A program made the position numbers and the translations under genes. A DNA stretch of 64,000 nt from Monocercomonoides exilis PA203 (taxonomy: Eukaryota > Protista > Preaxostyla): the NCBI GenBank assembly GCA_001643675.2, contig LSRY02000008.1, forward strand, positions 1,240,001-1,304,000, read 5' to 3'. The notes under the pieces are model-generated. The model was not told the DNA's origin. It made no database searches and was given only the letters and a program-made list of their open reading frames with translations. Positions 11,801-61,938 of this stretch are shown here, piece by piece; within the stretch, counting starts at the first letter, position 1; the number at the start of each line of letters is the position of its first letter.

Positions 11801-14800
11801 TCTCTTTCTTCTTCTTCTTCTTCTTCTTCTTCTTCTATTTTTAATTCTTCTTCCTTTTCTAATATTTCATCATCATCATCTTCTTCTTCTTCTCTTTCTT
11901 CTTCTTCTTCTTCTTTTAATAATTCTTCTAATATTTCATCAAATTCCTCTTCTTCTTTTTCTTCTTCTTCTTCTCTTCCTTATTCTTTTTCTCTTCCTCA
12001 TTCATTTCTCAAGAAATATTCCCCTTTTGCACTCAAACGCAAACAAAACCAATTTTTGTCCGGTTTTTCATCTTCTTCTCTTCTTTCTGCATTTTTTGAG
12101 GCTTCGAAAGGGAAAAAGAAGAATTCGAAGAAAAAATTAACTTCTTCTTCTTCTTCTTCTCTTTATTCTTCTTCTAATTCATCATCATCTTCTTCTCAAC
12201 AATATACAATAGAATCTTCATCAACAAAACGAAATGGAAAAGATGAAGAAGAGAAAGAGAAAGAGAATGAGAAAGAGAATGAGAAAGAAGATGAAGAAGA
12301 AGAAAATGAAGATTATTTCTTGAACTTAGATGATGATGATGATGAAGATGAAGATTATAATGATGAAGAAAGTGAAGAAAAAGAAAGAAGAAGAAAACAA
12401 GAAGATGAAGAAGAAGAAGAAGAAGAATCCGATTTTAATTCATCTTCATCTTTTTCTTCTTCCTCTTCTTCCTCTTCTTCCTCTTCCTCTTTCTTCACTG
12501 AATGCTTCCTCTGGACAATGACAGAGCTCCAGCGCAGAGAATACCAAGCTGCACGCGAAATCGTCCTCTTAATCGGCTCTGAAGCAAATCGCCTTCAAAT
12601 TCAACTGGAAAAATGTATTTTGGCAATGAACCATTTCAAAGAACTTGTTGCTCTGTGTGTGAATCAGCCGAGGAATGAGAAGGAGAAGGAGGAGGAGGAG
12701 AGGGAGGTGTGGAGGGTGTTGGAGAAGAGGAGGAGAAGAAGAAGAGAAGGAGAAAAAGAAGGAAGGGAAGAAAGAGAAAGAGAAGAACAACCAATGCCAT
12801 TGAATAATACAATTGAAGAAGGAGAGAAAGGAAAGAAAGAAAAAGAAGGAGAAAGAGAAGGAGAAGAAGGAGAAAACAATGAAGCCATCAAAAGCATAGC
12901 AGATGCACTTGAGGTGTTTGAGTCCAAGCCGTGGCTGTTTGTGGAGATGATGGGGTGTTTGTCGTTGGTGATGGAAGGCTTCATGCGATCTGTGCAGAAC
13001 ACACGCCTGTTCCTCCACAAGACGCTGGGCGAGCACAAAGAGATGTTTCTGGTGAAGCTGGAGAAGAAAGACAAAGACGTCTTTGCATTTGCGATGGAGC
13101 ACATGGAAGAAGTGAAGGCAGTTGTGCTGGAGAAGAAGGTGATGGATCAGCTGTGGGAGATGTCGGAAGAGAAGACGCTGCATCTGCTGGTGGATTCGAC
13201 TTCCACCACATTCAACTTTGGAAGTGGTGGTGGTGGAGGAGGTGGAGGAGGAGGGAATAACTTGAATTCTTCTTCTCATTCTAATTCTTCTAATTCTTCT
13301 CAATTGTCATCTGATAGCGATATATCTTCTCCTTCTCTTTCTCCTTCTCCTTTATCATCACCATCACCTTCTTCTTCTCCTTCCCCCTTATCATCTTCTT
13401 CTTCCTCTTCTTCCTCTTCCTCTTCTTCTCGCTCCATCCCCTTCTTCACCACCTCCGTTGCCTTTGAAGTGAACGATGTCTATGCCTCCCTGATGCCCCA
13501 GCACCCCGAAAGAGCCATCAAATACCTCGACCGTGTTCTCCTTTCTGACTCTTCCCGTGTGCGTGCATACGGCGACATCATGGCGTTGCTTTATGCCGAG
13601 TACAAACCGTCTGGCTTGCTTCCCTTTCTGCAGCAGGCGTCAAACTACAGTGTGACAAAAGCACTGCGCTTGTGTGAGGAGAGGAAGTTTGCAGTGGGCT
13701 TTGCTCTTGTTGAGGCGAAGATGGGGCTGTTTATGCGGGCGATGGACACGCTGGTGCTGAGTGTGCATGATGTTGGGCAGGCAGTGGAGCTGTGCGAGGA
13801 GGAAGGGAGAGGGATGGGAGAGGACGAAGAAGGAGAAGGAGGAGGAGTTGGAATTGGAGGAATTGGAGGAATTGGAGGAGGGATAGGAGAAAGAGATGGA
13901 GGAGAAGGAGGAGGAAAAGGGAAAGGGCAAGGGCAAGGAATAAGCCATCTTGTGCGCTTGGGGCTGGAAACGCAGAGTGTGCTGGGGATGACGCGGATGC
14001 AGGCAGATGCGCCGTTGATGACACAGATCATTGCATGTGCTGGGGCAAAGATGAAGCCGCAGGTGCTGATGCAGCTTCTGCCTGCGGGGAAAGTGATTGT
14101 TGGGGTGAAGCCAGCGCTGATTGGGATGCTGAACGAGAGGAGGATGAGGCATTCGGTGCTGCGGATGGCGGCAGCAGCAGGGAAAGTGGACAGCGTGGAG
14201 CTGATGAAGAGGATGGTGTGGGTGAGGAAGAAGGCGATACATGTTGGAGGGGATGGAGTGAGGAGAGAAGGAGGAAGAGAAATGGGAGGAAGGGAAGGAG
14301 GAAGAGATGAGAGGGAGAGAGAAAGAGAAGGGAAATGGGGGGAGGAGAAGGAATGGTGTTGTGCGTATTGTGGAGAGATAGTGTATGGATTGAGTGGAGC
14401 AGGCATTGGAGGAGGAGGAGGAGGGGGAGGAGGAGGGAGAAGGGGAGGAGAAAGAGGATTAAAAGAGCAATGCAGATATCTGAGGAAATACAAGGAAAGT
14501 GTGATATATGGGAGCGAAGGAGGGGAGGAAGGAGGGAGTGGAGGAGCAGGAGAAAGAGAAGGAAGAGGCGGAGAGGAAGGATATGTGGTGTTTGTGGAGC
14601 ATTTTGAGGATGGGGCAATGTTTGAGAGTGGGAAGCCGAATCCATTTGTGAAGAGTTCAGTACAAGATGAAGGGAGATTATCATCTTCTTCATCAAATAC
14701 TTCATTAAATTCTTCTTCTTCTCTTTCTTCTTCTTCTTCCTCCTCCTCCTCCTGTGTGTGTAGAGGCCTTCCGAAGGTGGTGGCGGACAAGCTGTACTGG

Positions 14801-15022
14801 TTTGCGTGTGGGCACATGTACCACGAGTCGTGTCTGATGGGGGCGATGGAGGAGTGCAGACACTATGCGCTGGACGAAGACCTCTCAAACAGCCTCCAAT
14901 CATCATCTCCATCTTCTCTTTCTTCTTCTTCTTCTTCATGTGTGTTGATTTCGCGCAAGACGGTGCGAGTGAACGGGAAGAGCATGCAGATGCCTGTTGT
15001 CTGCTTGAAATGCAGAGGGTGA
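8897..15022 (+). CDS. VPS41: Vacuolar protein sorting 41 (HOPS subunit): N-terminal WD40 propeller, alpha-solenoid/clathrin repeat, C-terminal RING-H2; expanded by poly-Ser/Gly/Glu insertions
   Basis: 2041-aa ORF with Vps41-typical motifs FQRPMIAVALHPNF, CGG, EGEIMNIKWNGRYIAWANSTGVRVYD, DDHLLWLI..RRFKEAL, LYAEYKPSGLLPFLQQASNYSVTKALRLCEER, and RING ligands CAYC...ACGHMYHESC...CLKC. Confidence 0.88.
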   Translation: MQNLPENETEEDAEEIEPLLKYNFYPLSFFVDPRSRATCIYFNQGLTVIGSSDGFVYWINRQNVKIRQARVSTDPINDVTISDDLHVGVATQDGQVIVLHHTEDNAIIKHQFQRPMIAVALHPNFKSKKELFCGGMEQKLLLVSKGLFKTSVKEIASMEGEIMNIKWNGRYIAWANSTGVRVYDYEKQGVIAKLGMFRPEQKMWTKIYPFSLSWYGSDTLLIACANRIVVYRVFENPDEHQRLATVLHQIDQLDFIVCGITPLVNNSVAILCLFEPETPQTPFDPPELRVVQLDQLPQGAVTLDQLLAAEKACDQLALEGTQNFGPRDYKLVNGVVMMMMNANTTMNTNVNERENRGENRGETGGGGERSGGGGGGGGGERGNNNNNSNVNSFQSSSSSSSSSNSNSSSLNNSLSSSSSSSSSPFQSNSSSSSSSYSSSSPQSSSSPSPLPSSLSSSSSSSSPSSSSPPSSSPPSPLPIMTLFILSPHMRLSAQQINTDDHLLWLISRRRFKEALKEATLANEKYPGLLKNVNIEEIIAAYLQFAMQTKQFDVAIHLATAHKHHFYIRRNIPLFQSLIRHLISAEKLEALGEIPLDEPRLSKETYAAVLNYYFSHSPVRFDKEVTRIPTEYFDVSLVVRQITAGEELKREVEDVVREGQRLVGLIEREKEKEKEKEREKEKEKESEMNKMINNNNNNKYTSSSSSSSSYPYQYQYQSNSSSSSSSSLSSSSLSSSSLSSSSSSPSSLSPSSLSPSSLSPSSLSHQLISLFLRLRSTNIGNDEKHTIFGRSVSKFGRILAKTKDFIEIQLKKMDELMKGRLEEMQEKEEEEKEEKEKEKEVDDEKEKDTDNSKNSLQNNTSSSSSSSSNLNSFSPSSSSPSSPSSSSSSSSSLSSSSSSSSSSSPSSSSPSPSPSSSSSSSFSSSSSSSSPCVFCGDLSESEFHFIRDQIAKGAYGGIPFSNSSSSSSSSLSSSSSSSSSSIFNSSSFSNISSSSSSSSSLSSSSSSFNNSSNISSNSSSSFSSSSSLPYSFSLPHSFLKKYSPFALKRKQNQFLSGFSSSSLLSAFFEASKGKKKNSKKKLTSSSSSSLYSSSNSSSSSSQQYTIESSSTKRNGKDEEEKEKENEKENEKEDEEEENEDYFLNLDDDDDEDEDYNDEESEEKERRRKQEDEEEEEEESDFNSSSSFSSSSSSSSSSSSFFTECFLWTMTELQRREYQAAREIVLLIGSEANRLQIQLEKCILAMNHFKELVALCVNQPRNEKEKEEEEREVWRVLEKRRRRRREGEKEGREEREREEQPMPLNNTIEEGEKGKKEKEGEREGEEGENNEAIKSIADALEVFESKPWLFVEMMGCLSLVMEGFMRSVQNTRLFLHKTLGEHKEMFLVKLEKKDKDVFAFAMEHMEEVKAVVLEKKVMDQLWEMSEEKTLHLLVDSTSTTFNFGSGGGGGGGGGGNNLNSSSHSNSSNSSQLSSDSDISSPSLSPSPLSSPSPSSSPSPLSSSSSSSSSSSSSRSIPFFTTSVAFEVNDVYASLMPQHPERAIKYLDRVLLSDSSRVRAYGDIMALLYAEYKPSGLLPFLQQASNYSVTKALRLCEERKFAVGFALVEAKMGLFMRAMDTLVLSVHDVGQAVELCEEEGRGMGEDEEGEGGGVGIGGIGGIGGGIGERDGGEGGGKGKGQGQGISHLVRLGLETQSVLGMTRMQADAPLMTQIIACAGAKMKPQVLMQLLPAGKVIVGVKPALIGMLNERRMRHSVLRMAAAAGKVDSVELMKRMVWVRKKAIHVGGDGVRREGGREMGGREGGRDEREREREGKWGEEKEWCCAYCGEIVYGLSGAGIGGGGGGGGGGRRGGERGLKEQCRYLRKYKESVIYGSEGGEEGGSGGAGEREGRGGEEGYVVFVEHFEDGAMFESGKPNPFVKSSVQDEGRLSSSSSNTSLNSSSSLSSSSSSSSSCVCRGLPKVVADKLYWFACGHMYHESCLMGAMEECRHYALDEDLSNSLQSSSPSSLSSSSSSCVLISRKTVRVNGKSMQMPVVCLKCRG

Positions 15023-15274
15023 ATGGGAAGAGGAGGAGGAGGAGGAAGAGGAAGAGGAATGGGAAGAAAATGAATGGGTAGAGGAAGAGGAAGGCAGAAA
15101 AGGAGAAGAAGGTGTTTTGTTTGCTTTGTGTTGGGATTTTATTATGTGAATTATTATTTTTTTAATTTTTTATTTATTATTTATTATTTATTATTTTTCA
15201 ATTTTTTATTTTTTATTTTTTCTGCCGAACAGAAAATGCAGAATATATGTGCAAATGCAAAGACAAAAAATGAA

Positions 15275-15309
<35 letters not shown>

Positions 15310-15676
15310 GAAAGAGAAAGAGAGAAAGAAAGAGAAAGAAAGAGAAAGAAAGAAAAAAAATAGAAAATAGAAAAATAGAAAAGGAAATGAGAGAGAGAGC
15401 GGTCATTGGAATTATTTGTGCATTGAAAAGTGATTGCTTTGCAGTTGCATTTTGATAGCTCATGTTTTTTTTATTTTTTCCTTCTTCTTGATATTTTCAA
15501 CGACATTTTTATTTGAAATTTTATTCCCGTTTTTCTTTCCTATCTTCTCTTTCTTCTTCTCTCAAAAATTTTTAATATGTTTTGAGTTTCATTTATTTAT
15601 TTTATGTAAACAATTATTGGGGAAAAAAAATAATGGAAATGCAAAAAGATGAACGATAATTTTTAAAATTTATTTT

Positions 15677-15952
15677 TCAAGATGTCACGAGCCTCTTGTA
15701 ATTCTTAATTCCCTTTAAGCATTTTTTGCGATATTTTTCCTTCTGTGTCTTCTTTGCACGTCTCTTTATTGCCTCGATATCCTTGTGTTCATTGAATTTT
15801 TCGAAATATGGAAGTTGTCGATTCATGGACTTTTGTTCAGTTTTTGGGCTTCGTGCACGCAATGTTGGCGCTTCATTATAAAGTGTATTCGCATTAACTG
15901 CGAAGTGAAGAAAATTATATCGTATATGTCCGTTGGTTTTCTTCCGACTCAC
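15677..15952 (-). CDS. Short basic ORF (91 aa), hypothetical; weak resemblance to the RNase P/MRP subunit Rpp21/Rpr2 N-terminus (mirror copy 25227-25502 +)
   Basis: HIRYNFLHFA resembles the R-L-N-F-L-Y-Q-A start of Rpp21, and KEKYRKKC resembles K-x-x-x-C-K-K-C with the first Cys lost; no second CxxC in frame. Confidence 0.2.
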   Translation of the reverse strand: MSRKKTNGHIRYNFLHFAVNANTLYNEAPTLRARSPKTEQKSMNRQLPYFEKFNEHKDIEAIKRRAKKTQKEKYRKKCLKGIKNYKRLVTS

Positions 15953-16610
15953 AATCGATTTTGTTTGCTTCTATCGAATACATGTTTATTTATTTATTAT
16001 TACATTTAGCTGTCTTTGTTGCGTTGTTTGTTTCCTGGGGGAATAAGACTTCAATAAATTAAATTTGAGGCAAGATGCGAGCCCTTATTGGGTCTGCCAT
16101 TGCAAAGAGCCAAAAATAATCTCATTCTTTGCATCCTCTCCTTACGAAATCATCAGCAGCTGGTTGCGCGGTTGCGTGATCTGCTTTGTGTGTGGCAACA
16201 AACATACCAACTCGTAAACCAAAGAGTTAAAAGTCAAGAAAGAAGTTCCAGTGAGCGAGTGCCTTTTAACGGATAATTATGAAAATAACGGAATTAAAAA
16301 GAAAGAAAGAAAAGAAAGAAAGAATCACTTTCCTTCTCAGGCACCTATTGTGGATGTGTATAGGAATTGCGCTTCGGGATATATTCGGCCGATCTGCCCT
16401 CTGCACGCAGGGGCACTAGCGATGCCGAGTGTGGCATGAGCATTTCGGCTGCTACGCCTATCGCAAGTTTCTTCTTCGCTGTGTCTGCTTCAGTTCCTTC
16501 ACATTCGCTGTGTTTTATGCCCTTCCATTTGTGACTTTCAGTTGTGTGCCGGAAATAGCAATGTGTGCAGAATCAAAGAAAATGGCAGGCAATAGATTTC
16601 ATTGGCGCTA

Positions 16611-16672
16611 TTGAAAGACTTGACAGACTTGACGGACTTGACGGACTTGACGAACTTGATTGACTTGATGGC
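16611..16672 (+). repeat. 9-bp tandem repeat (TTGACGGAC)-like x7; mirror copy ~24507-24568
   Basis: ttgaaagac ttgacagac ttgacggac ttgacggac ttgacgaac ttgattgac ttgatggc; reads (VKS)n on the opposite strand. Confidence 0.9.
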
Positions 16673-16759
16673 TCTGAGAGGCGAGTGCTGCTGGAACATC
16701 TTGCCAAGCATTGTTGCTATTTTGGGGTTATTGTGCTTGACCAAACGAAGAAATGCCAA

Positions 16760-18703
16760 CTATCGTTGGTGAAACTGCTTTCTGAGAAGAAAAGGAAGAA
16801 GAGTCGAAAACAGTGCAGGAGGAGGCGATGAAGACAATGAAGTCGACGAAGAAGATGAAGAAGACGAAGTCAATGAAAATGACAATGACGACAATGAAGA
16901 AGAAGAAGGAGAAGAGAGATCCGGCTCAGAGAACAATGATTTTGAGACATTCATATCTGTTATCTCCACACCAACCATCGATAGCTGCGACAGCGGCACC
17001 ACAAACACTGACGACGACATTACATATTCTCCTGAAGAAACACTCGTGGTGATCACAACATCCTCCAACGAGAGTGACCCGCCCCCATCAGACACCACAA
17101 CCACGCTCGGCGAAGAAGGATTTGCATTTGAGTTGCAATCAACCTTCATGTGCAATAAACCAAGGTGACCTGTCGAAACACTGAACAGCGCTTCTGCTGC
17201 TGAAAGTGCCCCTGTTCCAATCAAACTCTTATCTTTGCCTCTCCCAATGACTGAAATCTTCTTTGTCTCAATATTAATAGTTGTTGTCTCGCTTGTGTGA
17301 TTCCCTTCCATCAGCGTGACTGACAGGCTCACCTGGATCACGCTCTTATCAACTGCAACACCAATGGTTCGGCATGCACTTGACTCATCCAGTCCACATA
17401 ACTCTTCTTCACCACCTCCACTCACTGCCACAAATCGATTGAGAATCCCTCTCTTCAGCCAATTCCACTTTTCTGTATGCTGAAAATACCAGGTGTTTGC
17501 ATTCGAGTAGTTGTATGCATAGCACATTCTCTGTTCATCAGTGTTTGTGGTATAACATTCAAAGAACGGATTTCCTGAATTCAAATAGACATTGTAATAA
17601 TCAACGTATTCAACATCATGCCCGTATGGAATTGAAGTTGTTCTGCACTTGCATTCATGAAAGAACAAAAAATAACAATAAATTTGATCATCTGGCATTT
17701 CTGTTTTTTCTGGTCTGAAATACAATCCTCCTCCATATGCAGTTGCTGAACATGAAATAAACTGAATGCTCCTCATTTTGAATGCAGCAGGAACGTATTG
17801 ACAAAGCATGCCTCCACCATAATAATTTGTAACCGAACATGAAGTGAAGCGGCAGTCAAACACACACGCACTCTCCCCTTCTCCATTTTCTGTTTGAATG
17901 CATCCTTCTGAAACCTGAAAATTTTCAAGAAGAAGTCCTCCTCCACCATTATTTGCTTTACAATTCTGGAATTCGCATCCACTGATTCGAACACACGTTG
18001 AAATCGTATAAATTAGTATTCCACCCCCACGATGGCCTTGTGCGGTGCAGGCATTAAATTTGTTGTTCACAATCTCAACAGATTTAATGTTGTAGCAATT
18101 TATACCTCCACCGCACCAATGCGCGACACATTCATTGAATGCACAATGCGAAACTGAAACAGTGGCGGATGACTGATTGTACATGCAGATGGCCCCTCCG
18201 CTTGACACTCCATCAGTCCACGAGTCACTTTCTCCTGTTGTCCTCGATCCACTCCATTCGCACCAAGTGAATGTATTCTGTCCATTATCCGTTGTGTTTT
18301 GTCTGTCTGGTTTCAATGGTACCTCTGCAGTTCCAGTGCATTCAACGTTTCTTGTCCGACAACACCCAATGAATGAAGTGTTTGAGGCTGTCAGAGAGGC
18401 CAAGGGATTGTTGATGGAGGGGACAATCCCGCCATCATATGCATCACAAACAGACGAAAAGGAGCAACTATTCATCAAACATGATGTTTGGGTTGACATT
18501 GTGGTTGAAGGTGAGCATGCCTCATTTGCTGTTGAGATGTTGAAAAATATTAGTTTGAAGAAGGATATAAGGGGAATGGAAGGTGAAGAAAAGAATGGGG
18601 TTGATGAGACACAAAAAGAAGAGAAGTGTGATTCGCTCACTGAAATACTCCCTTCAATGCCTTCCCCATATCCATCTCCTTCTCTTCCTTCGCCTCTGCT
18701 CAT
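16760..18703 (-). CDS. G1: Cys-rich right-handed beta-helix (Pmp/pectin-lyase-like) family protein, 647 aa, truncated; palindromic twin of G2
   Basis: Repeated FxxC-x(4-6)-GGG(I/L/M) rungs, YDGGIVPS, YCYFLFFHEC, PYGHD, NPFxECYTTN; no signal peptide or TM segment visible. Confidence 0.8.
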   Translation of the reverse strand: MSRGEGREGDGYGEGIEGSISVSESHFSSFCVSSTPFFSSPSIPLISFFKLIFFNISTANEACSPSTTMSTQTSCLMNSCSFSSVCDAYDGGIVPSINNPLASLTASNTSFIGCCRTRNVECTGTAEVPLKPDRQNTTDNGQNTFTWCEWSGSRTTGESDSWTDGVSSGGAICMYNQSSATVSVSHCAFNECVAHWCGGGINCYNIKSVEIVNNKFNACTAQGHRGGGILIYTISTCVRISGCEFQNCKANNGGGGLLLENFQVSEGCIQTENGEGESACVFDCRFTSCSVTNYYGGGMLCQYVPAAFKMRSIQFISCSATAYGGGLYFRPEKTEMPDDQIYCYFLFFHECKCRTTSIPYGHDVEYVDYYNVYLNSGNPFFECYTTNTDEQRMCYAYNYSNANTWYFQHTEKWNWLKRGILNRFVAVSGGGEEELCGLDESSACRTIGVAVDKSVIQVSLSVTLMEGNHTSETTTINIETKKISVIGRGKDKSLIGTGALSAAEALFSVSTGHLGLLHMKVDCNSNANPSSPSVVVVSDGGGSLSLEDVVITTSVSSGEYVMSSSVFVVPLSQLSMVGVEITDMNVSKSLFSEPDLSSPSSSSLSSLSFSLTSSSSSSSSTSLSSSPPPALFSTLLPFLLRKQFHQR

Positions 18704-20468
18704 CTTCCCTCCATATCCCTTCGCTCCAAACAGCCTGCCTGAGAAAATCTCTCCTCCTTTTCAATAAACTCCCTATTGTGCTCTAGTCAATCTTCATCTA
18801 CTTTCTATTTCACTTCTTTATTTCGCATTCCATGCTCTCTCTTTTATTCTCTGCCAGTTTTTAAACAATGTTGCTGTATACGTTTATTTCAACAGAAAGA
18901 TGTTAATTTTAATAATTGCTTTGCATTCTCGTAAAAATTTTCAATTGTTTAAAAAACTTTATTAGCAAAAACACGACAATATTTCATTTAAAACAAAAAA
19001 ATTCTTCACTTCCTCCTTTTGTTGATTTATTTTATTAAAAAAATGATTATTTTTTGAATTGTTTGTGGTAAATTATTATTATAAAAAACTCTTGCATGTA
19101 AATCTCATCTTTTTTAATGCTTTTTTAAAACCATATTAAAATTGTGTGACGTAAAAAATAATATCTAAATTTTGTGTCCACATCTGCTCCATTTGTCTTG
19201 ATTAACTATTTTTTTCTTATATGAGTGATTCTTTTTGATATTAAACATTTTTAATGAAATAATATGGGGGAAAATATAGGCTTTCAAGCTTTTTTTGCAC
19301 AAAGCATCAATAAATTGATTCACTCATAACTTTATCAATCATTTTCAGATTTCGAAATAAATTGGTTTTTCTTTTCAGTAAATAGCCATCAAAGTCGTTA
19401 TAATAAAAAGTTTTGTGACATTCCATGAATGTCAAAAAATGAACCCATTATTATAGAATTTTTTGAACACAAAACGCTTATCAAAAGTGCATAATTTTTC
19501 TTTGAAAATGCCTGAAATCAAATATTTTGTCCCACATCGATTTGAAAATTTGTTAGAAATTCAAAGATACAATGCTAAAAAAAATATGACAATATGTTAA
19601 CAGTTCATTGCCTTTCTTTTGTCGAATGTTTGTTTTAGGAATGATTACAACACAATAAGCAATTAGATATAAATAAAATTGTTAATGAAAATGGAATGAG
19701 GCATGAAACTATGCCCAGAAAATAAGCATGATTTCAAAAATAATCACACATATAAATATACATTGATTGAAAAAGAATGAATTTAAGCTGCTTGCTACAA
19801 ACAATTAAACACTGTGATTGGTTGCATTAGCCAAGTTTTTTTTTAAATTTATGAAAAGTCACGGATAATTAATAGTTGATTCAAAAATTAATTCCACATA
19901 TTTCTAACATTTTCTATATTCAAGCTTCAAATTCAATGATGATTATTATAATAAATAGAACGAATACTCAAATTCCAGAATTTGCGAAATTTAGAAAAAT
20001 TATGGATGTGTCTGTTAGTGTAAGCCAGTTACACTATTGTTGCGAAATATATGCAACTGAAAAATAATCCAATAAAAATTCAATTGATATATTTTTCTAT
20101 TAAAAATCATGAAGCGTCAGTCAGCTTTTGTTAAAACTTAATGAAATAATATAATATTTGCAGAAAATGGGAGATACTTTTTGATGTCAAATTATCTCTG
20201 ATAAAATTTTCAAATTGAGCATTTATCAAAAAAACTAAGAAATCAATCCAATGCTTTTGAAAATCAAATGAAAACTTTCACTGATATTCTTTTATTGCGG
20301 AAGATTGAAAAGGAAAACTATTTCAAAGCTCAAAACATATTTATTAAAATTAAGTTATTAGTTACGTTGCTTAGAAATAATTTTCACTCCGAAAAATGTT
20401 ATACTTACTTAAATATTCACGCACATATATATTTTTTTGATAATTCACTTTTATGAAATATAAGTTGT

Positions 20469-20710
20469 CTAATAATATTTAAAAAAAGTCACTTTTGTTT
20501 AATTTTCAGGATAAAATGAACATTGTGTGTTTTCATCAAAATTTCTTTCCAACTCACCAAATATCATTATCATTGAACAAGGAGCATGGACAATATGTTG
20601 TTTTAACTCTGGTTATGTTTGATAAGATGGAAAGAAATTTTGATGAAAACACACAATGTTCATTTTATCCTGAAAATTAAACAAAAGTGACTTTTTTTAA
20701 ATATTATTAG
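20469..20710. mobile_element. Degenerate ~242-bp inverted-repeat (MITE-like) element at the centre of P1
   Basis: AAAAGTCactttTGTTTAATTTTcAgG (from 20484) aligns with the TIR of the free element at 60379 (AAAAGTCgcaaaTGTTTAATTTTtAaG). Imperfect complementarity (9/13) continues into the spacer. The terminal GGG is lost. Confidence 0.5.
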
Positions 20711-50410: not shown

Positions 50411-50651
50411 AATGATTTATTTTTGAAATATCTCAAACGCGAAATTTTCATGCTATGTCGAACGTTTCTTATTCTTTTATCATTTTCACTTTTAAACTTT
50501 TTATTAAATCGAAAATAAAAAGTTTTGTTGAAATAATGAATATTCTATTTCTATCAACTTGAGTTGTTTCATGAGTTTGATCAAAAACCTTTGAAATAAT
50601 ACAAATAACATTTTGATTTCTTCATTAGCGACTTTTCAGAAAGAATAATGA
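50411..50651. mobile_element. Degenerate ~241-bp MITE-like element at the centre of P3
   Basis: Minus strand 50647-50623 reads TATTCTTTCTGAAAAGTCGCTAATG, nearly matching the TIR consensus. The symmetric left position reads ATTTATTTTTGAAATATCTCAAACG. Confidence 0.65.
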
Positions 50652-51971
50652 TATAATTGAGATAATAAATCAAATCCACAAATATAGAACCAAATGAAAA
50701 GAAATAATCGAGATGAATATGGAAAATGATTTGTGAGATCAGAAAATGATTTGGAGAATGGATAATCACGCGGCTTTTCGAGATTGATTTGTGAATATTC
50801 AATAGAAGTGAAATAGGCTTGTCAATTATTAATAAGACTTTATATTTGAGAAAGAAAAAGTCAAATAATGAACTGTCACAATGTTGTTATCACTTTCAAG
50901 TGTCCATTTCAAAGTGTCCCAATCTCAATTTCAAATCGACGTTTTTGACAGAAAACTTGTGAGATAAGATGAACAACCTCCCTCATCAAAATAAACTATC
51001 AAAATTGAAATTGGAAAACAAAAACATAAAAAGAACAAATGAATCGGTGTTGATGAATTTCAAAAACTTCTTTTTCATCGTTTTGTGAAAGAATAATTTG
51101 TTTTGATAAAAAAGAAGAAGAAAACAAAATAAACAAAAAACAAACATTCAATTCGGAAAAAATCAATATGGGTGATTAATTTTGAAATCATGATTTTGAA
51201 AGCCAATGAGTGCCTTATGGTTGATATAAAAAAGGATATATAGTTAAATATCAATGAAAAATAATCATTTCTAATAAAAAAGATTTCATTTATTTTTTGA
51301 TTCATATTTTTCATTTTGATAAATGTTTCTCATCAAAATCATGATAAAACCCATTTTCTAATTCCTCTGATTTCTCAATGAATAATTATTTTCATTTTTT
51401 CTCCCTGTCAAAATGAAAATGAATGATTGATAAATCAGAAGAGTTTGATATTATTTGACAAAAATACAAAAAAAAAGTTATCGTTTTCCTTTTTCATTCA
51501 TCAGTTGCTGTGAAAATGCTCTTGTCTGGTAATTTTCATCCTTTCCATATTTTCATCCATTCATCCATTCATTCATCCATTTGCTTGTTTGTTCATCAAC
51601 AAATCATTTTTGAAGTTCTTCAACAGTTTGTTCCGAAATTTCATATTTCTTTTCAAACAAGGGAACTGTTTGATTTTTTCATTTTGTAATAAAAAAATGT
51701 TGTGAAAATCTCATTTGAAAAAAAAAGAATAAAAAAGAAAAGATCGATATATATTTTTAATAACTATTGTAGTCTAAAAAATCATTCAAAAGCAGTTGGC
51801 TAATGAATGAAAAAATAAAAATCATATGAATTTTTTCATTGAAAAAAAAAAAGAAGGATTCAACAAAGAAACTTGTCCACTTTTTGTTTCTGCAAAACAT
51901 CGAAAATGGCAAAATAATTCGAATACTCTTTTTTTTTCAAAGAAAAAATAAATCGTTCATGTTCCATCAAA

Positions 51972-54299
51972 TTACTCACCTTTCTTCCTTTCCTTTTCAC
52001 AAATAAACCCGATTTTCTGCTCCTCGATAAAACAGGAGATTTCGAGTTTTGCAGCAGTGATGGTGCTTATTTTATGTGGGTTGCACGAGTTGCAGCAAAA
52101 CAGAAACAAAATCGCAACGCACTTATGATTTTTTATTCTTCCCTCCAATTTCACATGTGACCAAAAATTCATCTCAAAATCGCCCTTCCCAAACATACAA
52201 CCACTCTGCCCCCCTTCTGTTCTCGTGCTCATCATCCCGAACGTCTCTCCTGCCTTCACACTCTTTGCCACAACCACCCCATCTCCTTCAGTCAACTTCA
52301 CATTCGTCACCTTCACATTCGCCAGCACGCTATCTCCTGATGCTGTGGCTGTCAGATACAATGCAGATGACGACAATGACGACAATGAAGAAGAAGTAGA
52401 AGAAGAAGAAGAAGAGAGATCCGGCTCAGAGAACAATGATTTTGAGACATTCATATCTGTTATCTCCACATCAACCATCGACAGCTGCGACAGCGGCACC
52501 ACAAACACTGACGACGACATCACATAGTCTCCTGTTTTACTCGTGGTGATCACAACATCCTCCAACGAGAGTGACCCACCCCCATCAGACACCACAACCA
52601 CGCTCGGCGAAGAAGGATTTGCATTTGAGTTGCAATCAACCTTCATGTGCAATAAACCAAGGTGACCTGTCGTCACACTGAACAGCGCTCCAGTTGATGA
52701 AAGGGCTCCTGTTCCAATCGAACTTTTATCTTTGCCTTTCCCAATGACCGAAATCTTCTTTGTCTCAATATTAATAGTTGTTGTCTCGCTCGTGTGATTC
52801 CCGTCCATCAGCGTGACTGACAGGCTCACCTGGATCACGCTCTTTTCAACTGCAACACCAATGGTTCGGCATGCACTTGACTCATCCAGTCCACATAACT
52901 CTTCTTCACCACCTCCACTCACTGCCACAAATCGGTTGAGAATCCCTCTCTTCAGCCAATCCTTCTTATCTGTGTGCTGATATGTCCAACCCTTAGAATC
53001 CGTATAATTATATCCGTAGCACACTCTCTGGTCATCTGTGTTTGTGGTGTAACATTCATAGAACGGATTATTTTGAGATAAATATACACTGTAGTAATCA
53101 TAATACATCACATCATGCCCATATGGAGTGGCTGCAGAGCATTTGCATTCATGGAAGAACAAAAAATAACAATAAATTACATCTTTCTGTGATGTTGCTC
53201 GATTTGGATGTAAACACAATCCTCCACCTTCTTGCCGTGCAGAACATGAAAAAAACTGAATGCTCCTCATTTTGAATTGCGTTGCAGGAACAGTGGCACA
53301 ACGCATGCCCCCACCTTGCGAATTTGTAACTGAGCATGAAGTGAAACAGCAGTCAAACACACACGCACTTTCCCCTTCTCCATTTTCTTCTCCAATGCAA
53401 TCTGTTCCTGAAACCTGAAAATTGTCGAGATAAAGTCCTCCTCCCCAGCCATAAGAAGAACATTTCTGAAACTCACATCCGCTGATCCGAACACATGTTG
53501 AAATCGTATAAATGCACATCCCTCCACCAGCCCAAGTTTTTGCGGTGCATGAGTTGAACGTGTTGTTAATAATCTCAACCGATTTGATTTTTGCACACAT
53601 GACCCCCCCTCCATCATAATAGGCATAGCAGTCGTTGAATGAGCAGTGCTTAATAGAAACAGTGGCATTTGATTGGCCATACATGCAGATTGCCCCGCCA
53701 CTCGATATTCCATCTGAAATAGAATCGCTTGTTCCGGTCGTACTCGATCCATTCCATTCACACCAAATAAATGAATTAGCTCCATTGAATGTTTCATTCT
53801 GTCTGTCTGGCTTCAATGGAACTTCTGCAGTTCCTTCGCAAACAACATTTCTTGTCCGATAACATCCCACAAACGAGGTGTTTGAGGCAGTTAAAGAAGC
53901 CAAGGGATTGTTGAGTGAAGGTACAATTCCGCCATCATATGCATCATTAACAGACAAGAATGAGCAACTATTCATAAAACTTGATGTTTGGGTTGACGTA
54001 ATTGTTGGAGATGGGCAATCTGAAGATGCTGTTGAAATATTGAAAAATGTCAAATGAAAGAGGGATATAAGGGGAATGGAAGGTGAAAAGAAGAATGGGG
54101 AAGAAGATGAGAAACGCGATTCATTCACTGAAATTCTTTCTTCAACGCAACCTTCTCTTCTCAACGCCTTTAGCACAACGTTGCAAAATATCTCAATATG
54201 GCTGTGCTCATTTTTCTGCTTCTTCTTCCCCTTCTGATCATCATGGCTTCCCCACATCTCTTTTTTACCTTTTGTTTCAATTTTCTGCTTTTTTTCCAT
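51972..54299 (-). CDS. G8: palindromic twin of G7, 775 aa (TGH vs TGQ)
   Basis: ORF track; one amino-acid difference from G7. Confidence 0.8.
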   Translation of the reverse strand: MEKKQKIETKGKKEMWGSHDDQKGKKKQKNEHSHIEIFCNVVLKALRREGCVEERISVNESRFSSSSPFFFSPSIPLISLFHLTFFNISTASSDCPSPTITSTQTSSFMNSCSFLSVNDAYDGGIVPSLNNPLASLTASNTSFVGCYRTRNVVCEGTAEVPLKPDRQNETFNGANSFIWCEWNGSSTTGTSDSISDGISSGGAICMYGQSNATVSIKHCSFNDCYAYYDGGGVMCAKIKSVEIINNTFNSCTAKTWAGGGMCIYTISTCVRISGCEFQKCSSYGWGGGLYLDNFQVSGTDCIGEENGEGESACVFDCCFTSCSVTNSQGGGMRCATVPATQFKMRSIQFFSCSARQEGGGLCLHPNRATSQKDVIYCYFLFFHECKCSAATPYGHDVMYYDYYSVYLSQNNPFYECYTTNTDDQRVCYGYNYTDSKGWTYQHTDKKDWLKRGILNRFVAVSGGGEEELCGLDESSACRTIGVAVEKSVIQVSLSVTLMDGNHTSETTTINIETKKISVIGKGKDKSSIGTGALSSTGALFSVTTGHLGLLHMKVDCNSNANPSSPSVVVVSDGGGSLSLEDVVITTSKTGDYVMSSSVFVVPLSQLSMVDVEITDMNVSKSLFSEPDLSSSSSSTSSSLSSLSSSALYLTATASGDSVLANVKVTNVKLTEGDGVVVAKSVKAGETFGMMSTRTEGGQSGCMFGKGDFEMNFWSHVKLEGRIKNHKCVAILFLFCCNSCNPHKISTITAAKLEISCFIEEQKIGFICEKERKKGE

Positions 54300-54484
54300 A
54301 TTCCATTCGCATTCATCGCTTTTGAATATTCATGCAAAAGTCCCTATTATCAATTAAAAATATAAAGAAAAAATATAAAAAATATTTAAAATGTAATACA
54401 AAATATGAAAAACCAGTTCCATTTTCTTTTTGCAATCTTCTTCCTTTTCTCCTCCTCCTTCTTCTTCTCGAATTTTTGTCAAAA

Positions 54485-57400
54485 TTCTTCTTCAGCCATT
54501 TCTTCAATTTTCCGATTATTCTTTTCTGTTGATTCCCCTTCTTCTTTTTCAAAATTCAACATAAACCTTCAAAGCCCTCCTCTTCCATTCATTTCATTTA
54601 ATACCTCTGGCTCATTCTTCGATATTCTCAAAAAAATTGTGTTGCCTGATTTCTGAAATGCATCCAATGTGCTCTTTTCCCCATGTTCATTCATTCCCTG
54701 AAAACATCCTTCCATAAATCTTAATCCCTCAAAAATATAAAATAAATATGTGAAAAATTGGAGAAAAAAAATAATACAAAACAAACTCTGAAATATATTT
54801 ATTGCCAATCTTCACACACTTTCTTCTTCTTCAAAAGCCTCTCAAATTATTGTTCTTTTCTGCCAACAAAATTCGCCTTTTCTGTTTCCGCTGCCAATCT
54901 CAACATCAATGAAATCGATTCTGTTCTGCTTCAAAAAATTTGCTTTTTTCCAATTCTTGGCGCTGATTCCACTCAAATAATACACAAATAATAAAAATGC
55001 TTCAATAAAATTTTTAATGAAGAAGAAGATAATGACAGCGATGATGGCGATGATAGAGATGAAGATGATGAAGATGGTGAATGCGATGTTATTGTCAAGT
55101 TTGAATACTATATACCTTCTGTCAGAAGATATTCTCAGCATCACGGCCTCGTTCTCTGATTCAATGGATAACCCTTCGATGACATAAGGCTGAAGACAAA
55201 GGCAAAATGACTCAAATCCATTTTGCCTGTAATTTTCCTCAGCTGCTTGTATAACGCCAAACTGTCCGTTTTTCTCGTATTTTCGCCTCTCAACCCAAGT
55301 AATCTAATCCAGTTCCATCGCTCCCCTCAGTCCATAAAAGCAATGTCTTGCCCTTCTCATCCCAAGAAAGGCACCTTGTTCTGCTGCAGCTGTCTCTAAT
55401 CTCCTGTTTCAGTCATTTGCCCCAATCTCCCCAACAAACTTAAAAATGAAAATGTCCTCTTCCTCTTTTTAAAAACGTTCCCTTTTCATTGAATTTGGCT
55501 GTTCTTCCTTTTGGCCTTGGATGTCTTTCGACCCCGTTGATTTCTGCTCCATTAAAATTCATTTTTCATCAAATTTCTATCCATCGCGCATGCTGAGTCT
55601 ATAATAAGTCACTTAAATATTTATGACAAAATACATTCAGGCTCTAATATATTTGTAAGGTATCATTTGGCTCCCTTCCTCGCTGTTCTGCTCTGCAAAG
55701 AATAGATTGTCCATTTTTTATAAGTTGTCTGAATCACGACTTTGGAGAGGATACGGATAGAAATATCTTCACAATCAACAGAAAAATATAAAATACATAC
55801 ATTGAAAATTCTGCATTTCCATCGAAAATATTGTTGCTCCCCAGTATTCCAACAATCAAAATGAACAATTTCATCTTCCATCAAACAGATATTCTTTTGT
55901 AATACTCAACCTTTTCACTGGAAATATTTCACTTAGTCAATCTGCCTTTGTTTTAGCTTCGGAATCTGACCCCGTTGACAGTTTCTGAGCGTTTGACATT
56001 TCTTGATCATTTTCCATAACGAATAAGAGCCACAAAAGAAAAGGAGCACAACTCGATGTGCCGTGGCTGAATGGGCATATGAAGACAATGTGGTTGTAAA
56101 AGGATGGATTTGTGGTGTGGGGTGAAGGAGTTGAGTTCTTGGAGGAGGCAGGGTTTAGAGAGGGAATGGAACGATTAAAGGTATTTTTTGTGGAAAAGAG
56201 GTATTTTTGTGATATTTCAGAGGCAAAATGGATGTTTGGGAGATGGATTGGGATGAGGTTTGGAGGGATTGTTTTTTCGATTTTTGTGAGTTGGAAGGTG
56301 TGGGAATTGTGTTTATTATTTGAGAAAAGGAATTTGATGTGTTGGAGGTGGGATAAGAGGGAAGATAAGAAGGGCAGAAGATGGGTGAAGCGAATGGAAT
56401 ATATTTATTGGAGGAGAGGACGAGAAATGGAGAGATATGTGGAGGAGATTTTTTTTTATTTTCAAATGCAGAGAGAGAGGAGGAGTTCATATGAGGCGGA
56501 GCAAGGTGGAAAAGTTTTTGTGGGCTTATGTTTGATAAGAAAGAGAAGCGGGGTTGAAGGGGAAAAAAAAGTGAGAGATATTTTTTTATCTTTTTTTATT
56601 TTTTATTGAAAGGACAGTTTGGTCGCGCCTCTCATTTGCGGGGCAAGTGTTGGAGGCGGAGGCAGAGGAAGACGGGAAGAAGGAACATCAGCACTGGCAC
56701 TTTGCATTAGAGGTGTGGAGATGGATTCGTGACAGGGATGGATCGAGATGAGGTGCTGACCACGAGAAGATGTTTTGCGCCAGAGACATACAAAGAAATG
56801 GAGATATTTATTTTTATTGGTTGGAAGAAGGGGAATGGGAGCTGGGGAGACAGGGATTGTGATATTTGGTGGGATGGTATTGTTGTTGTTTTGGGGGGAA
56901 ATGGAGAGAAGAAGAAGAAGATTTTGGCAAGAGATAGGAAGGGATTCTTTGGATGGAATCTTCTTCATTGCTTGTTTTTTTATGGAATGGAATTTGTGGA
57001 GGTTATTTGGGTGGAAACAGAACAGAGGATTGAGCTTTTGTTAATATTTTAAAAAGAAGAAGAAGAAGAAAGAAAAAGTCAGCAAAAGGTGGTTATTGTG
57101 AAAGATATAGGTTTGCATTTTTTTTAAAATTATTTTAATTTTTCTTCACATATTATTATTTATGAAATTAGGATTTTTGCAGGATTGCTCAATGGCAATG
57201 AATGAACAAGGAATATGTCAAGAGGGGATGTTGGATGCATTAAAAGAAATCTGGAGATAATAATTGGAGGGCGTTTGGTGGAGTGAGCGGACGCAAAATA
57301 TAAATGAAAGGAAAAGAGAAGAAGATATATTTTTTTGAAGGTTTTGGAAGGCATATACGATGAATCTTGTTAAAAGTCAAAAATGAGATCAAGGAATTGA

Positions 57401-57818
57401 TGATGCAGCAGAAGAAGAAATTCAAGAAAAATTGAGAAGAAGAAGCGGAAGATGGTGAAAAGAAAATGGTACGGGGCTTTTCATATTTATTATTGAAATT
57501 TTTTTGCAATTTAATATTTTTGTATATTTTTAAGATTTTTGTAATATTAAATATGTTTTTCAATTGATAATAGGGACGTTTGTATAAGCCTTCAAAAGCG
57601 ATGGAAGTGAATAGAATGAGGAGAGAAGGCAGAATTTGATCCCAGAAGAAAAGGGGATTTTAAGGAAAGTTAATGACGAAGAACATTTGAATGCCGTTTC
57701 CATTTAGCGGAACAAAGGGAAAAAGATGCTTTTCTCTTGGGAATATGCATTTCAGAAGCGGAAGAAGAAATAGGAAAATGAAGAGTTTCTGTGAGCGAAT
57801 CACACTTTTCTTCTTTTT
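54485..57818 (-). repeat. 3.3-kb inter-gene cassette, copy C (inverted)
   Basis: Reverse complement of copies A and B. Confidence 0.95.
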
Positions 57819-59351
57819 TCCAATTTTATCTCATCACATTCCATATCTCTTGTTTCACTCTCCAAATAAACATTTTTCAATATTTCAACAGCATCTTCAG
57901 ATTATTCACCTTCAACCACTACGTCATCCCAAACCACATGCCTGATGAACAGCTGCCCTTTCTCATCAGTGTGTGATGCATATGATGGCGGAATTGTTCC
58001 CTCTCTGAACAATCCATTGGTTTCTCTGACTGCCTCAAACACTTCATTCGTTGGGTGTTGTCGGACAAGAAATGTTGAATGCACTGGAACTGAAACTAAT
58101 AAGAAACAGCCAGGGAGGCAGAACGAAACATTCAATGGAGCAAACTCATTCACTTGGTGTGAATGGAGCGGATCGAAGGCTACTGGAGAAGTTAGCTCAT
58201 ACGCCGATGGCTCTTCGAATGGTGGAGCAATTTGCATGTTCAGCTTATCGTCTGGAACGCTTTCAGTGAAATGCTGTTCGTTCAGCGGATGTGAAGCGTA
58301 TTATTCGGGAGGAGGCATTCATTGCTACAACATCAAATCGGTTGATATTACAAATAACACATTCGACTCATGCACTGCTCGAACATGGATTGGAGGAGGG
58401 ATGTGCATTTTAACAATTACAATTTGTGTTCGGATCAGCGGATGTGAATTCCAGAATTGCAAAGCATATAGCCATGGAGGAGGACTTTATCTTAATGATT
58501 TCAAGGTTTCAGGAACAGGATGCATTGGAGAAGAAAATGGAGGAGGGGAGAGTGCGTGTGTGTTTGACTGCAGTTTCACTTCATGTTCGGTTACAAATTA
58601 TTATGGTGGAGGCATGCGTTGTTACAATGTTCCTAATCAATTCAAAATGAGGAGCATTCAGTTTATTTCATGTTCTGCGATGTCAACTGGAGGAGGATTA
58701 CATTTGGAGCCATACAAACAAACAGCACCATCTGACGTGATTTATTGTTATTTCCTTTTCTTCCATGAATGCAAGTGCAGAACGGCTTCAATTCCATATG
58801 GGCATGACATAATCTATGCAGATTATTATAATGTATTTTTGAATTCAGGCAATCCGTTCTATGAATGTTACACAACGAACACAGATGAGAAGAGAATGTG
58901 CTATGCGTATAATTACTCGAATGCAGGTGCCTGGACATATAACCAAACATCAAAAAAGAATTGGCTGAAGGATAAGATGATTTATGTGTCAGTGAATGGG
59001 ATTGATTCATATGAGCTGTGTGGGGCAAATGAATCAAATCCGTGTCTAACAGTGAAGAAGGCATTCGAGATGTGTGAAATACAGATAAGCTTGGCAATCA
59101 CACTGATGGATGGGAATCACACAAGCGAGACAGCAACAATTGATATTGGGGAAAAGAAGGTTTCAATCATTGGGACGGGCAAAGATAAAAGTTCGATTGG
59201 AACAGGAGCACTTTCATCTACAGGAGCGTTGTTCAGTCTGACGAGTGGCCATTTGGGAATGAGCCATTTGAAGATTGATTGCAACTCAGCTGCGGGAACT
59301 TCGCCTAGTGTTGTTGTTGTATTTTATGAAAGAAAAAATATTTTCACTTGA
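57791..59351 (+). CDS. G9: Cys-rich beta-helix family protein (ORF 57945-59351, 468 aa); upstream family sequence frameshifted at ~57820
   Basis: VSESHFSSF at 57791 is followed by a deletion/frameshift relative to G3; family motifs resume in the 57945 frame; ends after SPSVVVV. Confidence 0.75.
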
Positions 59352-60378: not shown

Positions 60379-60631
60379 GGGTCATTCTTTTCGAAAAGTC
60401 GCAAATGTTTAATTTTTAAGTTTTATAAAAATGTTCCTTATTTGATCATTTTTTGTAAAAATTCAATCAGATTTCTCCCTCATGCACTTTTTCTCACATC
60501 AAATAGGTTTTTGAATTCAAATTTAATATGTGACAAAGATTACAGTATTCAAAGAAATAATTGGTCAAAAAATGTTCAATTTCATAAAACCCAAAAATAA
60601 AACATTTGCGACTTATCAATAAGAATGACCC
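60379..60631. mobile_element. Free-standing 253-bp MITE-like element with ~50-bp imperfect TIRs
   Basis: Left GGGTCATTCTTTTCGAAAAGTCGCAAATGTTTAATTTTT; right end reverse-complement GGGTCATTCTTATTGATAAGTCGCAAATGTTTTATTTTT; flanked by ATTT on both sides. Confidence 0.8.
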
Positions 60632-60818: not shown

Positions 60819-61083
60819 GGGTGATTATTTTTGAAATTATGGCATTTTTCGTGGTGTGAATTATTTTCTTTTTCACAGTTATTTGCAAAATAAATATTCT
60901 AAAAAAAAGTTTTTGATGCTTTCAAATTATTGACTTTTAAATGCATGTTGTCATAGAAAGACAAAAAATGTTCATATTTGATTTTAATAAAAAAAATAAT
61001 CAGATTTAATTAAAAGCATTTGTGACAAATTGTCCAACTTGAAAATTGTGTTACGAAGAATGTGAAATCAAAAAGAATCACCC
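60819..61083. mobile_element. 265-bp MITE-like element of the same broad TIR family
   Basis: AT|GGGTGATTATTTTTGA ... TCAAAAAGAATCACCC|AT (15/16 TIR match). Confidence 0.7.
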
Positions 61084-61681
61084 ATATGAAACAAAAATGT
61101 TGAAATATTTAAAAACAAAAGTATAGTCACTGAGCAAAATTCTGTTTCAATTCTGATTAAAAAAACTTATCTTTTAAATCTTATTCATATCTTTTCTGAT
61201 AAAAAATAACCATATTGCATGATCAAAGTTTCGAATAAATGATGGGAATAATGGAAAAAATATTTTGAACAATTTCAATTTTTTTCTGAAATAAAATAAA
61301 ATTAATGTTGAGAAATATGAATGTCTTGTTGAAATGGTTTTTTTTTTTGCAAATTTTGGATTTATATATTGAAACATAAAGAATAAAAGAAAAAACTCAA
61401 ATTCCAGGAAAAAAGACATTCATGATTGAATAATATTATGTTATTATTGATTATTAATTCATATAGAGTTTCATAAATAGTATGTTTTTTATCTTTCTTT
61501 TGAATGAAATACAAAAAAAGTTTCATCCTTTGATTGACACCAAAAATCAAGAAAAAATCGATTTTAAAAATACAAGATTTTTTTTTATTTTATATTCCAT
61601 CATTATTGTTTATGGAGATTATTCACAACAAAGTGTTTTTCAACTGTGGGATATTTTGTTTTTTCCCCACTATTTGAAGAT

Positions 61682-61938
61682 GGGTGATTATTTTTGAAAT
61701 CATTATTTCCCCCTTGAATTTATCAATTTGCAAATTCATCATTCTGTGAAAGAAATGAATAAAAATAGAGATGACATCACCGTTTCGATTCAGTGTCTTT
61801 CTTTTGTCTCTCATATTGTCATTATTAATAAACATCAATGTGTTGAACATTTCTTTTTTAATGAATACATTTTTTTATTTGAAACTGTCCGGCTGTCTTC
61901 ATTTTTAAATTAACATATGATTTCAACAATAATCACCC
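61682..61938. mobile_element. 257-bp MITE-like element of the same broad TIR family
   Basis: AT|GGGTGATTATTTTTGAAATCAT ... ATGATTTCAACAATAATCACCC|AT (21/22 TIR match). Confidence 0.8.

Follow-up and report, generated by a model that had tools for sequence, protein, structure and literature searches.

Large inverted duplications centred on transposon hairpins in the genome of Monocercomonoides exilis

Background

The region considered here is a 64,000 nt stretch of the genome of the mitochondrion-less protist Monocercomonoides exilis PA203 (contig LSRY02000008.1, C80:1240001-1304000; hereafter the window), which contains three large palindromes, P1, P2 and P3, each centred on a small inverted-repeat element of 246-254 bp with dispersed copies in the genome. 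An original prediction, drawn up from the letters of the window, had described these co-axial elements and had interpreted them as nucleation sites for the palindromes. Our analysis confirms the observation and shows that it extends beyond the window: in the contiguous sequence that we read, which amounts to 154 kb, each of the six large palindromes is co-axial with an element bearing terminal inverted repeats (TIRs), although only 11 copies of the three element families involved are present there. The elements at the axes of P1 and P2 are transposable elements of the miniature inverted-repeat type (MITEs), and the sequence immediately flanking them is mirrored rather than bounded by a target site duplication (TSD), a pattern predicted by fold-back priming from a hairpin.

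Unless a contig label (C80, C53, C47 or C71) or a locus label (of the form L0xx) is given, coordinates are positions in the window. Genome-wide counts cover 82,301,135 bp in 101 contigs, and the contiguous sequence was supplemented with locus-level samples of free MITE copies (9 of the P2 family and ~17 of the P1 family), on which our estimate of per-element frequency rests. The strings ‘palindrom’ and ‘inverted’ are absent from the text of the paper describing the assembly (PMC8767320), and we found no report linking Monocercomonoides with palindromes in the literature that we searched, within which the natural variant of a known mechanism described below is new for M. exilis.

Results

Palindromes in and around the window

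Self-comparison of the window identifies P1, P2 and P3 as inverted duplications present in the assembly. P1 occupies 11779-29376 and, aligned with its reverse complement over 17.6 kb, is 99.2% identical to it. Three features lie in its left arm (11779-20551): the 3' part of a Vps41 gene, a beta-helix gene at 16760-18703 on the minus strand and, at the centre, the left stem of the MITE. The right arm (20628-29376) has a beta-helix gene on the plus strand, at 22476-24419, together with a truncated Vps41 copy on the minus strand (open reading frame (ORF) 26163-29555). From ~12050 to the loop, and excluding the outer 250 bp, which are of low complexity, the two arms differ by 2 substitutions (one of which alters an amino acid), one 6-bp indel and two 1-bp indels. 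Variants that distinguish the arms lie at 17348/23831 and 18601/22578, and the 6-bp indel is at 15346.

P2 (36955-43262) has arms at 36955-40035 and 40183-43262, which are 100% identical in their inner portions (37878-40035 and 40183-42340) and 92% identical in their outer parts (36955-37881 versus 42336-43262; 92-96% beyond 37878). The boundary in the left arm at which full identity gives way lies inside a beta-helix gene at 37068-38507 (plus strand), and the gene copy of the right arm, at 41711-43146 (minus strand), is chimeric with an arm of P3 from ~42915. P3 extends from ~42915 to 58175, with high identity running from ~42915 to 50407 and in the mirror of that interval. It includes a 5-kb block in which the arms are 100% identical (44518-49527 versus 51560-56569), and its inner section at 49517-50407 is 97% identical to its counterpart. 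The left arm (42915-50407) encodes a 775-aa beta-helix protein at 46788-49115 (plus strand); the right arm (50655-58175) contains a gene at 51972-54299 (minus strand) and has its outer boundary in a further gene at 57945-59351 (plus strand).

A fourth palindrome, P4, begins within the window, where the start of its left arm occupies 61190-64000. Its complete arms, in window coordinates, lie at 61190-82015 and 82434-103262 about an axis at ~82225, and are 20.8 kb long and 97.8% identical. Upstream of the window, palindrome D covers at least C80:1220001-1229643, and contig C53 contains a further palindrome of 15.3 kb. Considerably smaller is a perfect palindrome of 973 bp on contig C47 (locus L038, C47:1474300-1477200, positions 971-1934 of the locus), which has a loop of ~16 nt, consists of a P1-family MITE with 346 bp of mirrored flank, and adjoins a protein-kinase-like ORF. 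It was recovered among 15 loci chosen solely because they hold a P1-family copy, and is the smallest fold-back product that we have seen and probably the youngest.

Within the left arm of P4, a 341-aa ORF at 62753-63778 (minus strand) has a Phage_integrase (tyrosine recombinase) domain (E=3.6e-8), and may represent a Crypton- or DIRS-like element.

Central elements belong to several MITE families

The element at the centre of P2 (39983-40235) is a 253-bp MITE with perfect TIRs of 52-53 bp and an unpaired core at 40036-40182. Allowing up to 2 mismatches, an 18-nt core of its TIR matches 1367 times genome-wide, versus 4 for a reversed control, and the matches usually occur as inward-facing pairs 200 bp apart, giving ~680 elements. 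A hidden Markov model (HMM) built from eleven copies of this family matches the P2 centre at E=1e-49 and a free-standing element at 60379-60631 at E=8e-60; the latter has a 4-bp TSD (ATTT) and non-palindromic flanks. Direct 4-bp TSDs of the sequences ATAT, ACTT and ATTT accompany free copies of the P2 family.

The original prediction had placed a single element family at all three centres, which we reject: the P1 centre has no match to the P2-family HMM at E<=10, and the centre of palindrome D belongs to an unrelated family. The P1 element, earlier placed from 20484 with a length of ~242 bp, is in fact a 246-bp hairpin MITE at 20467-20712, which has a perfect stem and mirrored flanks and lacks a TSD. 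Pairing, previously described as imperfect just inside the centre, is perfect at P1 up to the non-palindromic loop of ~76 nt (20552-20627) in which the sequence turns around. Against its own profile this element scores E=7.5e-54 as a full-length member of a separate hairpin-MITE family, of which at least 263 candidate copies are present genome-wide. The P1 family has a TTTTTGAAAAGT-type part of the TIR core and a 4-bp TSD (mostly ATAT) in common with the P2 family, and they are probably siblings, mobilised by enzymes that are themselves related.

The P3 centre (50404-50657) is decayed: its right TIR is still recognisable at 50623-50647, as had been noted, while its left TIR has degenerated. 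Taken alone, the right TIR is marginal against the P2-family HMM (E=0.024), yet a profile built from P3 together with its module paralogs picks up free copies of the P2 family at E=4e-7 to 1e-3, and one P3-type paralog (L033) retains the exact TIR core. On these profile matches we regard the P3 centre as a decayed member of the P2-type MITE superfamily, and the earlier statement that it shares the P2 TIR holds in this restricted sense.

Beyond the window, the centres of P4 and of the C53 palindrome are P2-type elements, that of P4 having acquired an insertion of ~270 bp, a second element inside its loop. The centre of palindrome D is a 316-bp element with stems of ~140 bp, and its long-TIR family has 189 candidate copies. 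Predicted single-stranded folding energies are -140 kcal/mol for D, -95 for P1 and -54 for P2, compared with approximately -16 to -22 for shuffled sequences.

The P1 and P2 centres have the hallmarks of MITEs, namely TIRs, a TSD of fixed length, and many small, dispersed copies devoid of coding capacity. Termini are conserved in alignments of 11 P2-family and 18 P1-family copies, and free copies of the two families are flanked by 4-bp direct repeats (ATAT, ACTT, ATTT, ACAT). A 4-bp AT-rich TSD is nevertheless insufficient by itself to name a transposase superfamily. Two additional inverted-repeat elements of ~260 bp, at 60819-61083 and 61682-61938, lie off any axis and have similar-looking termini; they had been counted with the P2 element, but are unmatched by the P2-family HMM and look like a different MITE family. 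Elsewhere, copies of P1, P2, P1 and D type are clustered within 0.9 kb at C53:330277-331154 (in L024), which suggests a shared insertion hotspot.

Elements lie on the axes and their flanks are mirrored

With element boundaries at the axes set from dispersed copies elsewhere, the axis of the element and that of the palindrome are offset by 0-1.5 bp in P1, P2, P3, P4, D and the C53 and C47 palindromes. At the density of 11 copies in 154 kb, the chance that a random axis would fall within a few bp of an element axis is <0.1% per palindrome, and a coincidental association is excluded even if the cases are reduced to the approximately five that may be counted as independent. At least two unrelated families occupy axes, which argues that hairpin structure matters rather than any particular sequence.

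The bases adjoining the axis copies are informative about the order of events. Flanks are mirrored at P2 and C53 (gcaa | ttgc) and at P1 (agtt | aact), and likewise at C47; none of these four copies has a direct TSD, and the mirroring begins at the first base outside the element. Mirrored flanks without a TSD imply that, from the end of the element outwards, one of the two original flanks gave way to a copy of the other. Judged from these flanks, the simplest reading would be that the element was present first and that its flank was replaced later. Such mirroring is rare among free copies: flanks are mirrored beyond the element in none of the 9 P2-family copies and in one of the ~17 P1-family copies, the exception being C47.

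Paralogous modules and the divergence of arms

Divergence between arms is graded or patchy, being zero near most axes and reaching 8-25% at the outer ends. Identical inner arms with graded divergence outwards are found in P2, P4, D and C53, and inter-arm substitutions are mostly distal: D and C53 lack them throughout their inner 3.5-5 kb, and P4 has few in its inner 9 kb. Close to the axis of P3-type palindromes this pattern is reversed, two of the paralogs having 18-22 substitutions within their innermost 500 bp.

Modules of P2 type are found at three loci and those of P3 type at six, with centres and inner arms in common. For the P2 and P3 centres, we had considered the closest copies as independent seeding events, and rejected this since they are whole-module paralogs. 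Those of P2 (C53 and P4) match it at 85-96% over ~3.1 kb of arm on both sides, and of the five other copies of the P3 centre four are palindromic and one is single-armed. Arms are 97-100% identical within the P2, P4 and C53 loci versus 85-96% between them, and for P3-type arms the corresponding figures are 97-99% and 85-92%. This greater similarity within than between loci indicates that arm-to-arm homogenisation acts on older palindromes. Where the hairpin is strong, homogenisation often proceeds from the centre outwards, consistent with repeated fold-back repair, whereas around a decayed central hairpin it occurs via internal conversion tracts.

The single-armed P3-type locus (L034, C71:26400-31700) has the centre and the right arm, with a left arm of only 262 bp (88% identical), and represents either a palindrome now lacking one arm or a half-module in which fold-back never took place. 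Underlying P2 and P3 is an older unit of 5.6 kb in three copies (29684-35269, 41832-47407 and 53680-59236; 90% identical in both direct and inverted comparisons), from which it follows that the P2/P3 array was built by several rounds of duplication.

Outer junctions and the genes carried

The outer return junction of P1 (29150-29400) lies in a low-complexity (GAA)n/(GAT)n tract, the mirror of which is a (TTC)n tract at 11779-11990 inside Vps41. The Vps41 gene itself (8897-15022, plus strand) is an intron-free ORF of 2041 aa with a long low-complexity insert encoded by (TTC)n. Formation of P1 made a second, 5'-truncated copy (26163-29555, minus strand), in which the TPR and RING regions are still encoded in an open frame, and which is joined to an unrelated acidic low-complexity stretch. 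Positions 1-4000 of the window are strand-skewed (GC skew ~0.6, AT skew ~0.39) with internal repeats of ~74% identity, and 2034-2501 resembles the low-complexity part of Vps41 at 11514-11987 in reverse orientation.

P2 and P3 have their outer limits within beta-helix genes that are inverted paralogs, and identity there declines from 100% to ~75% within a few hundred bases. Genes in the arms of D and P1-P3 encode cysteine-rich proteins with GGG-type repeats that are 60-80% mutually identical, and the arms of P4 and C53 contain DNA homologous to genes of this family. A Pfam search of the beta-helix ORFs returned only a sub-threshold match to Beta_helix; an Atlas feature search returned a Preaxostyla-only cluster and look-alikes of DUF1565, Chlam_PMP and Beta_helix, which we treat purely as a lead. 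No signal peptide or membrane anchor was seen in the beta-helix ORFs examined, and the label of ‘surface protein’ for this family is an assumption. No gene of the family was found at the C47 palindrome.

Individual genes bear traces of these rearrangements. While the left-arm gene of P2 (37068-38507) is intact (479 aa), its right-arm counterpart (41711-43146, minus strand) is split into two overlapping ORFs of 211 and 287 aa, and the split is located where the tract of 100% identity ends. The right-arm gene has a 5' end that belongs to the P3 arm and is for this reason identical to the gene at 57945-59351, which makes the right-arm gene a three-part mosaic. Separately, a tract of 433-480 bp (34842-35317) is 92-94% identical to part of a P1 gene that is otherwise 75% similar, and looks like ectopic conversion.

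Discussion

Probable natural fold-back at hairpin MITEs

We consider that the palindromes probably arose as natural fold-back (i.e. hairpin-primed) duplications seeded at hairpin MITEs, and that they were subsequently kept alike by arm-to-arm recombination. Under this scenario, a break or stalled fork would occur beside an element and, following resection, the 3' strand would snap back on the element's own inverted repeat. The snapped-back 3' end would then prime copying of the opposite flank over distances of between 0.35 and >20 kb, and the product would be rescued as part of a normal chromosome by annealing to, or recombining with, sequence beyond the break that is homologous or of low complexity. 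Established palindromes would be re-homogenised, often from the axis outwards, giving identical inner arms and diverged outer ones. A replication template switch at the same hairpin would be an alternative route that fits the data equally well. Since inverted paralog arrays supply homology for re-joining, the final rescue would also explain why the large palindromes read here all carry members of the beta-helix family.

The repair background of M. exilis may be relevant to this scenario. Metamonads have been reported to be without proteins of non-homologous end joining (PMC8516963); our genome search did not find Ku, Mre11 is present, and a search for Sae2/CtIP gave no match, as did its control query. 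In yeast, foldback inversions arise from single-stranded DNA hairpins, those with small loops being suppressed by MRE11, SAE2 and YKU80, and secondary rearrangements mediated by homology stabilise the products (PMC7467729). Given that YKU80 suppresses small-loop foldbacks in yeast, a Ku-less background is plausibly permissive, and if end joining through Ku is absent, breaks would tend to be channelled into resection and fold-back.

A number of our observations weigh against this interpretation, or narrow it. P2-type and P3-type palindromes are paralogous modules, such that independent seedings number approximately five (P1, C47, the P2 group, the P3 group and D). Seeding must also be a rare event per element, given that 25 of the 26 sampled free MITE copies are without mirrored flanks, and the loss of TSDs at the axes could in principle also have resulted from later arm-to-arm conversion. 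The P3 centre forms a weak hairpin (-22 kcal/mol as single-stranded DNA) and the inner 0.5-0.9 kb of P3-type arms is more diverged, indicating that the present identity of P3-type arms reflects ordinary gene conversion to a greater extent than fold-back. Finally, our evidence for the palindromes comes from assembled contigs. The proposal that an old short inverted repeat primed a young long one survives in part: it agrees with the mirrored flanks and missing TSDs, and disagrees with the graded or patchy divergence of arms and with the greater age of the inner 0.9 kb of P3-type arms.

Alternative explanations

The dependence on assembled contigs raises the question of whether fold-back chimeric nanopore reads, or fill-in at hairpins during end repair of the library, were built into the contigs by Canu. 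The assembly was produced from native, unamplified DNA sheared to ~20 kb and prepared with the SQK-LSK108 kit for Oxford Nanopore sequencing, using Porechop to remove chimeras, Canu 1.8 with permissive correction settings, Nanopolish and ten rounds of Pilon (PMC8767320). The read N50 of 8.9 kb (PMC8767320) and the permissive correction would leave room for such an error, and the arms of P1 (8.7 kb) and L035 are nearly or completely identical. However, arms with genuine substitutions are not what fold-back reads yield, and those of P2, P3, P4, D and C53 have true substitutions (<=2% overall) and sharp outer junctions; even in P1, the 2 substitutions and the 6-bp indel survived polishing with Nanopolish and Pilon, which argues for two physical copies. 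Palindromic modules recur, moreover, as paralogs at several loci, and the DNA was native, with chimeric reads removed. We therefore regard an artefact as improbable, with what small chance there is concentrated on the youngest palindromes. The reverse order of events, in which palindromes came first and MITEs later inserted at their centres (e.g. through a transposase favouring the tips of cruciforms or hairpins), would draw on the fact that the usual target, ATAT, is itself palindromic, and on the second element gained inside the loop at the centre of P4. Insertion into a pre-existing centre should nonetheless leave a direct, self-complementary 4-mer, whereas the axis elements have no direct TSD and their flanking 4-mers (gcaa/ttgc and agtt/aact) are mirrored without being palindromic. 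This order would also have to place three families, one of them unrelated, exactly on axes, when most of the ~680 and at least 263 copies appear to be in ordinary non-palindromic DNA (9 of 9 sampled in the P2 family and all but one in the P1 family), and we think it unlikely, if marginally less so than an artefact. The least probable of the alternatives, and in our opinion very unlikely, is that the palindromic modules are mobile foldback-type transposons with long TIRs that carry beta-helix genes, the MITEs being their deletion derivatives. The shared centres and inner arms of P2-type modules at three loci and P3-type modules at six might be taken to indicate mobility, but the paralogs differ in arm length (2.6, 7.6 and 20.8 kb) and outer content and have no common ends, the arms of P1 terminate in a microsatellite and include a housekeeping gene, Vps41, in truncated form, and the MITE families have precise ends and TSDs of their own.

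A different question is whether the process has been selected. Members of the beta-helix family, which resembles Pmp-like or right-handed beta-helix proteins, are carried by six of the six large palindromes read, and patchy, segmental differences between arms occur inside genes, as might be expected of a dedicated diversification system in which MITE hairpins generate and refresh palindromic cassettes of surface beta-helix genes. Such a system seems doubtful to us, although less so than the alternatives above, given that the C47 palindrome adjoins a kinase-like ORF in place of a family gene, that P1 carries a broken copy of Vps41 and some duplicated genes are split or truncated, that no surface signal was found in the ORFs, and that easier fold-back rescue or retention in inverted paralog arrays would explain the association with these genes equally well. 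The suggestion, made in the original prediction, that the elements serve a dedicated amplification of a surface-protein gene family was itself conjectural, and finds little encouragement in the mirroring of ~1 in 26 free copies, in the kinase-like neighbour at C47 or in a surface location that is assumed. A known break-repair accident that recurs naturally fits our observations, and a dedicated amplification system is not supported. A further version, slightly better placed though still unlikely, is that MITE hairpins act as built-in fold-back sites that repeatedly create and refresh palindromic cassettes of Pmp-like beta-helix genes, with centre-out homogenisation and ectopic conversion shuffling variants in a manner resembling antigenic variation, and with Ku-less repair making the process common enough for selection to act on it.

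Significance

Hairpin-primed inverted duplication has been studied in detail in mutants of yeast, in cancer genomes and in Leishmania under drug selection, and has rarely been seen as a recurrent, fixed force in a wild genome. Such events appear to be preserved as a natural series in the M. exilis assembly, with palindromes from 1 kb to 42 kb and ages ranging from arms without differences to arms diverged in their outer parts, all on transposon hairpins. This series offers testable links between transposon load and segmental duplication, between the loss of Ku-type end joining and fold-back repair, and between arrays of inverted paralogs and the persistence of fold-back intermediates that would otherwise be lethal. 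In addition, the palindromes affect the gene counts and gene models of the M. exilis reference genome.

Comparison with known systems

In the rDNA of Tetrahymena, a short inverted repeat with a non-palindromic spacer, located beside a programmed break, becomes the centre of a giant palindrome. That case involves one programmed developmental locus with a defined breakage site, whereas in M. exilis many loci and transposon-derived inverted repeats are involved, and programming is not in evidence. Leishmania provides another protist genome in which dispersed repeats are associated with recurrent inverted duplication of neighbouring genes (PMC4028189), and its linear amplicons with inverted duplications are MRE11-dependent (PMC4256157). 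Its products, however, are extrachromosomal, stochastic and drug-selected, and arise via pairs of long repeats, unlike those of M. exilis, which are chromosomal and fixed, with the turnaround occurring within a single small element.

Origin-dependent inverted-repeat amplification (ODIRA) likewise involves a template switch at short inverted repeats and generates inverted copies without loss of information (PMC4689423). It predicts an interstitial inverted triplication with two inverted-repeat junctions, whereas P1-P3 are duplications with one inverted-repeat junction and one return junction at homologous or low-complexity sequence. Having considered ODIRA as a source of the palindromes, we rejected it, as self-comparison reveals two young copies per palindrome and no triplication, with a single junction at an inverted repeat.

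The palindromes of mammalian sex chromosomes resemble those described here in having multi-kb arms of >99% identity, a unique spacer and multi-copy gene families (PMC8600007, PMC3723533, PMC8327919), and arms that are closer within than between palindromes. In M. exilis, by contrast, the spacer is a single MITE of ~250 bp, identity is mostly graded from the axis, the arms are smaller (0.35-21 kb) and there are no known sex chromosomes.

The foldback inversions of the yeast Saccharomyces cerevisiae also offer a parallel, in that a short inverted-repeat hairpin beside a break primes an inverted duplication that is stabilised through homology (PMC7467729). The genes that suppress small-loop events there (MRE11, SAE2 and YKU80; PMC7467729) include one for Ku, which was not found in the M. 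exilis genome. Unlike their yeast counterparts, the M. exilis products are fixed and interstitial, occur at many loci of a wild genome and have later been homogenised, and their seeds are transposon hairpins with stems of 50-140 bp and loops of 16-150 nt.

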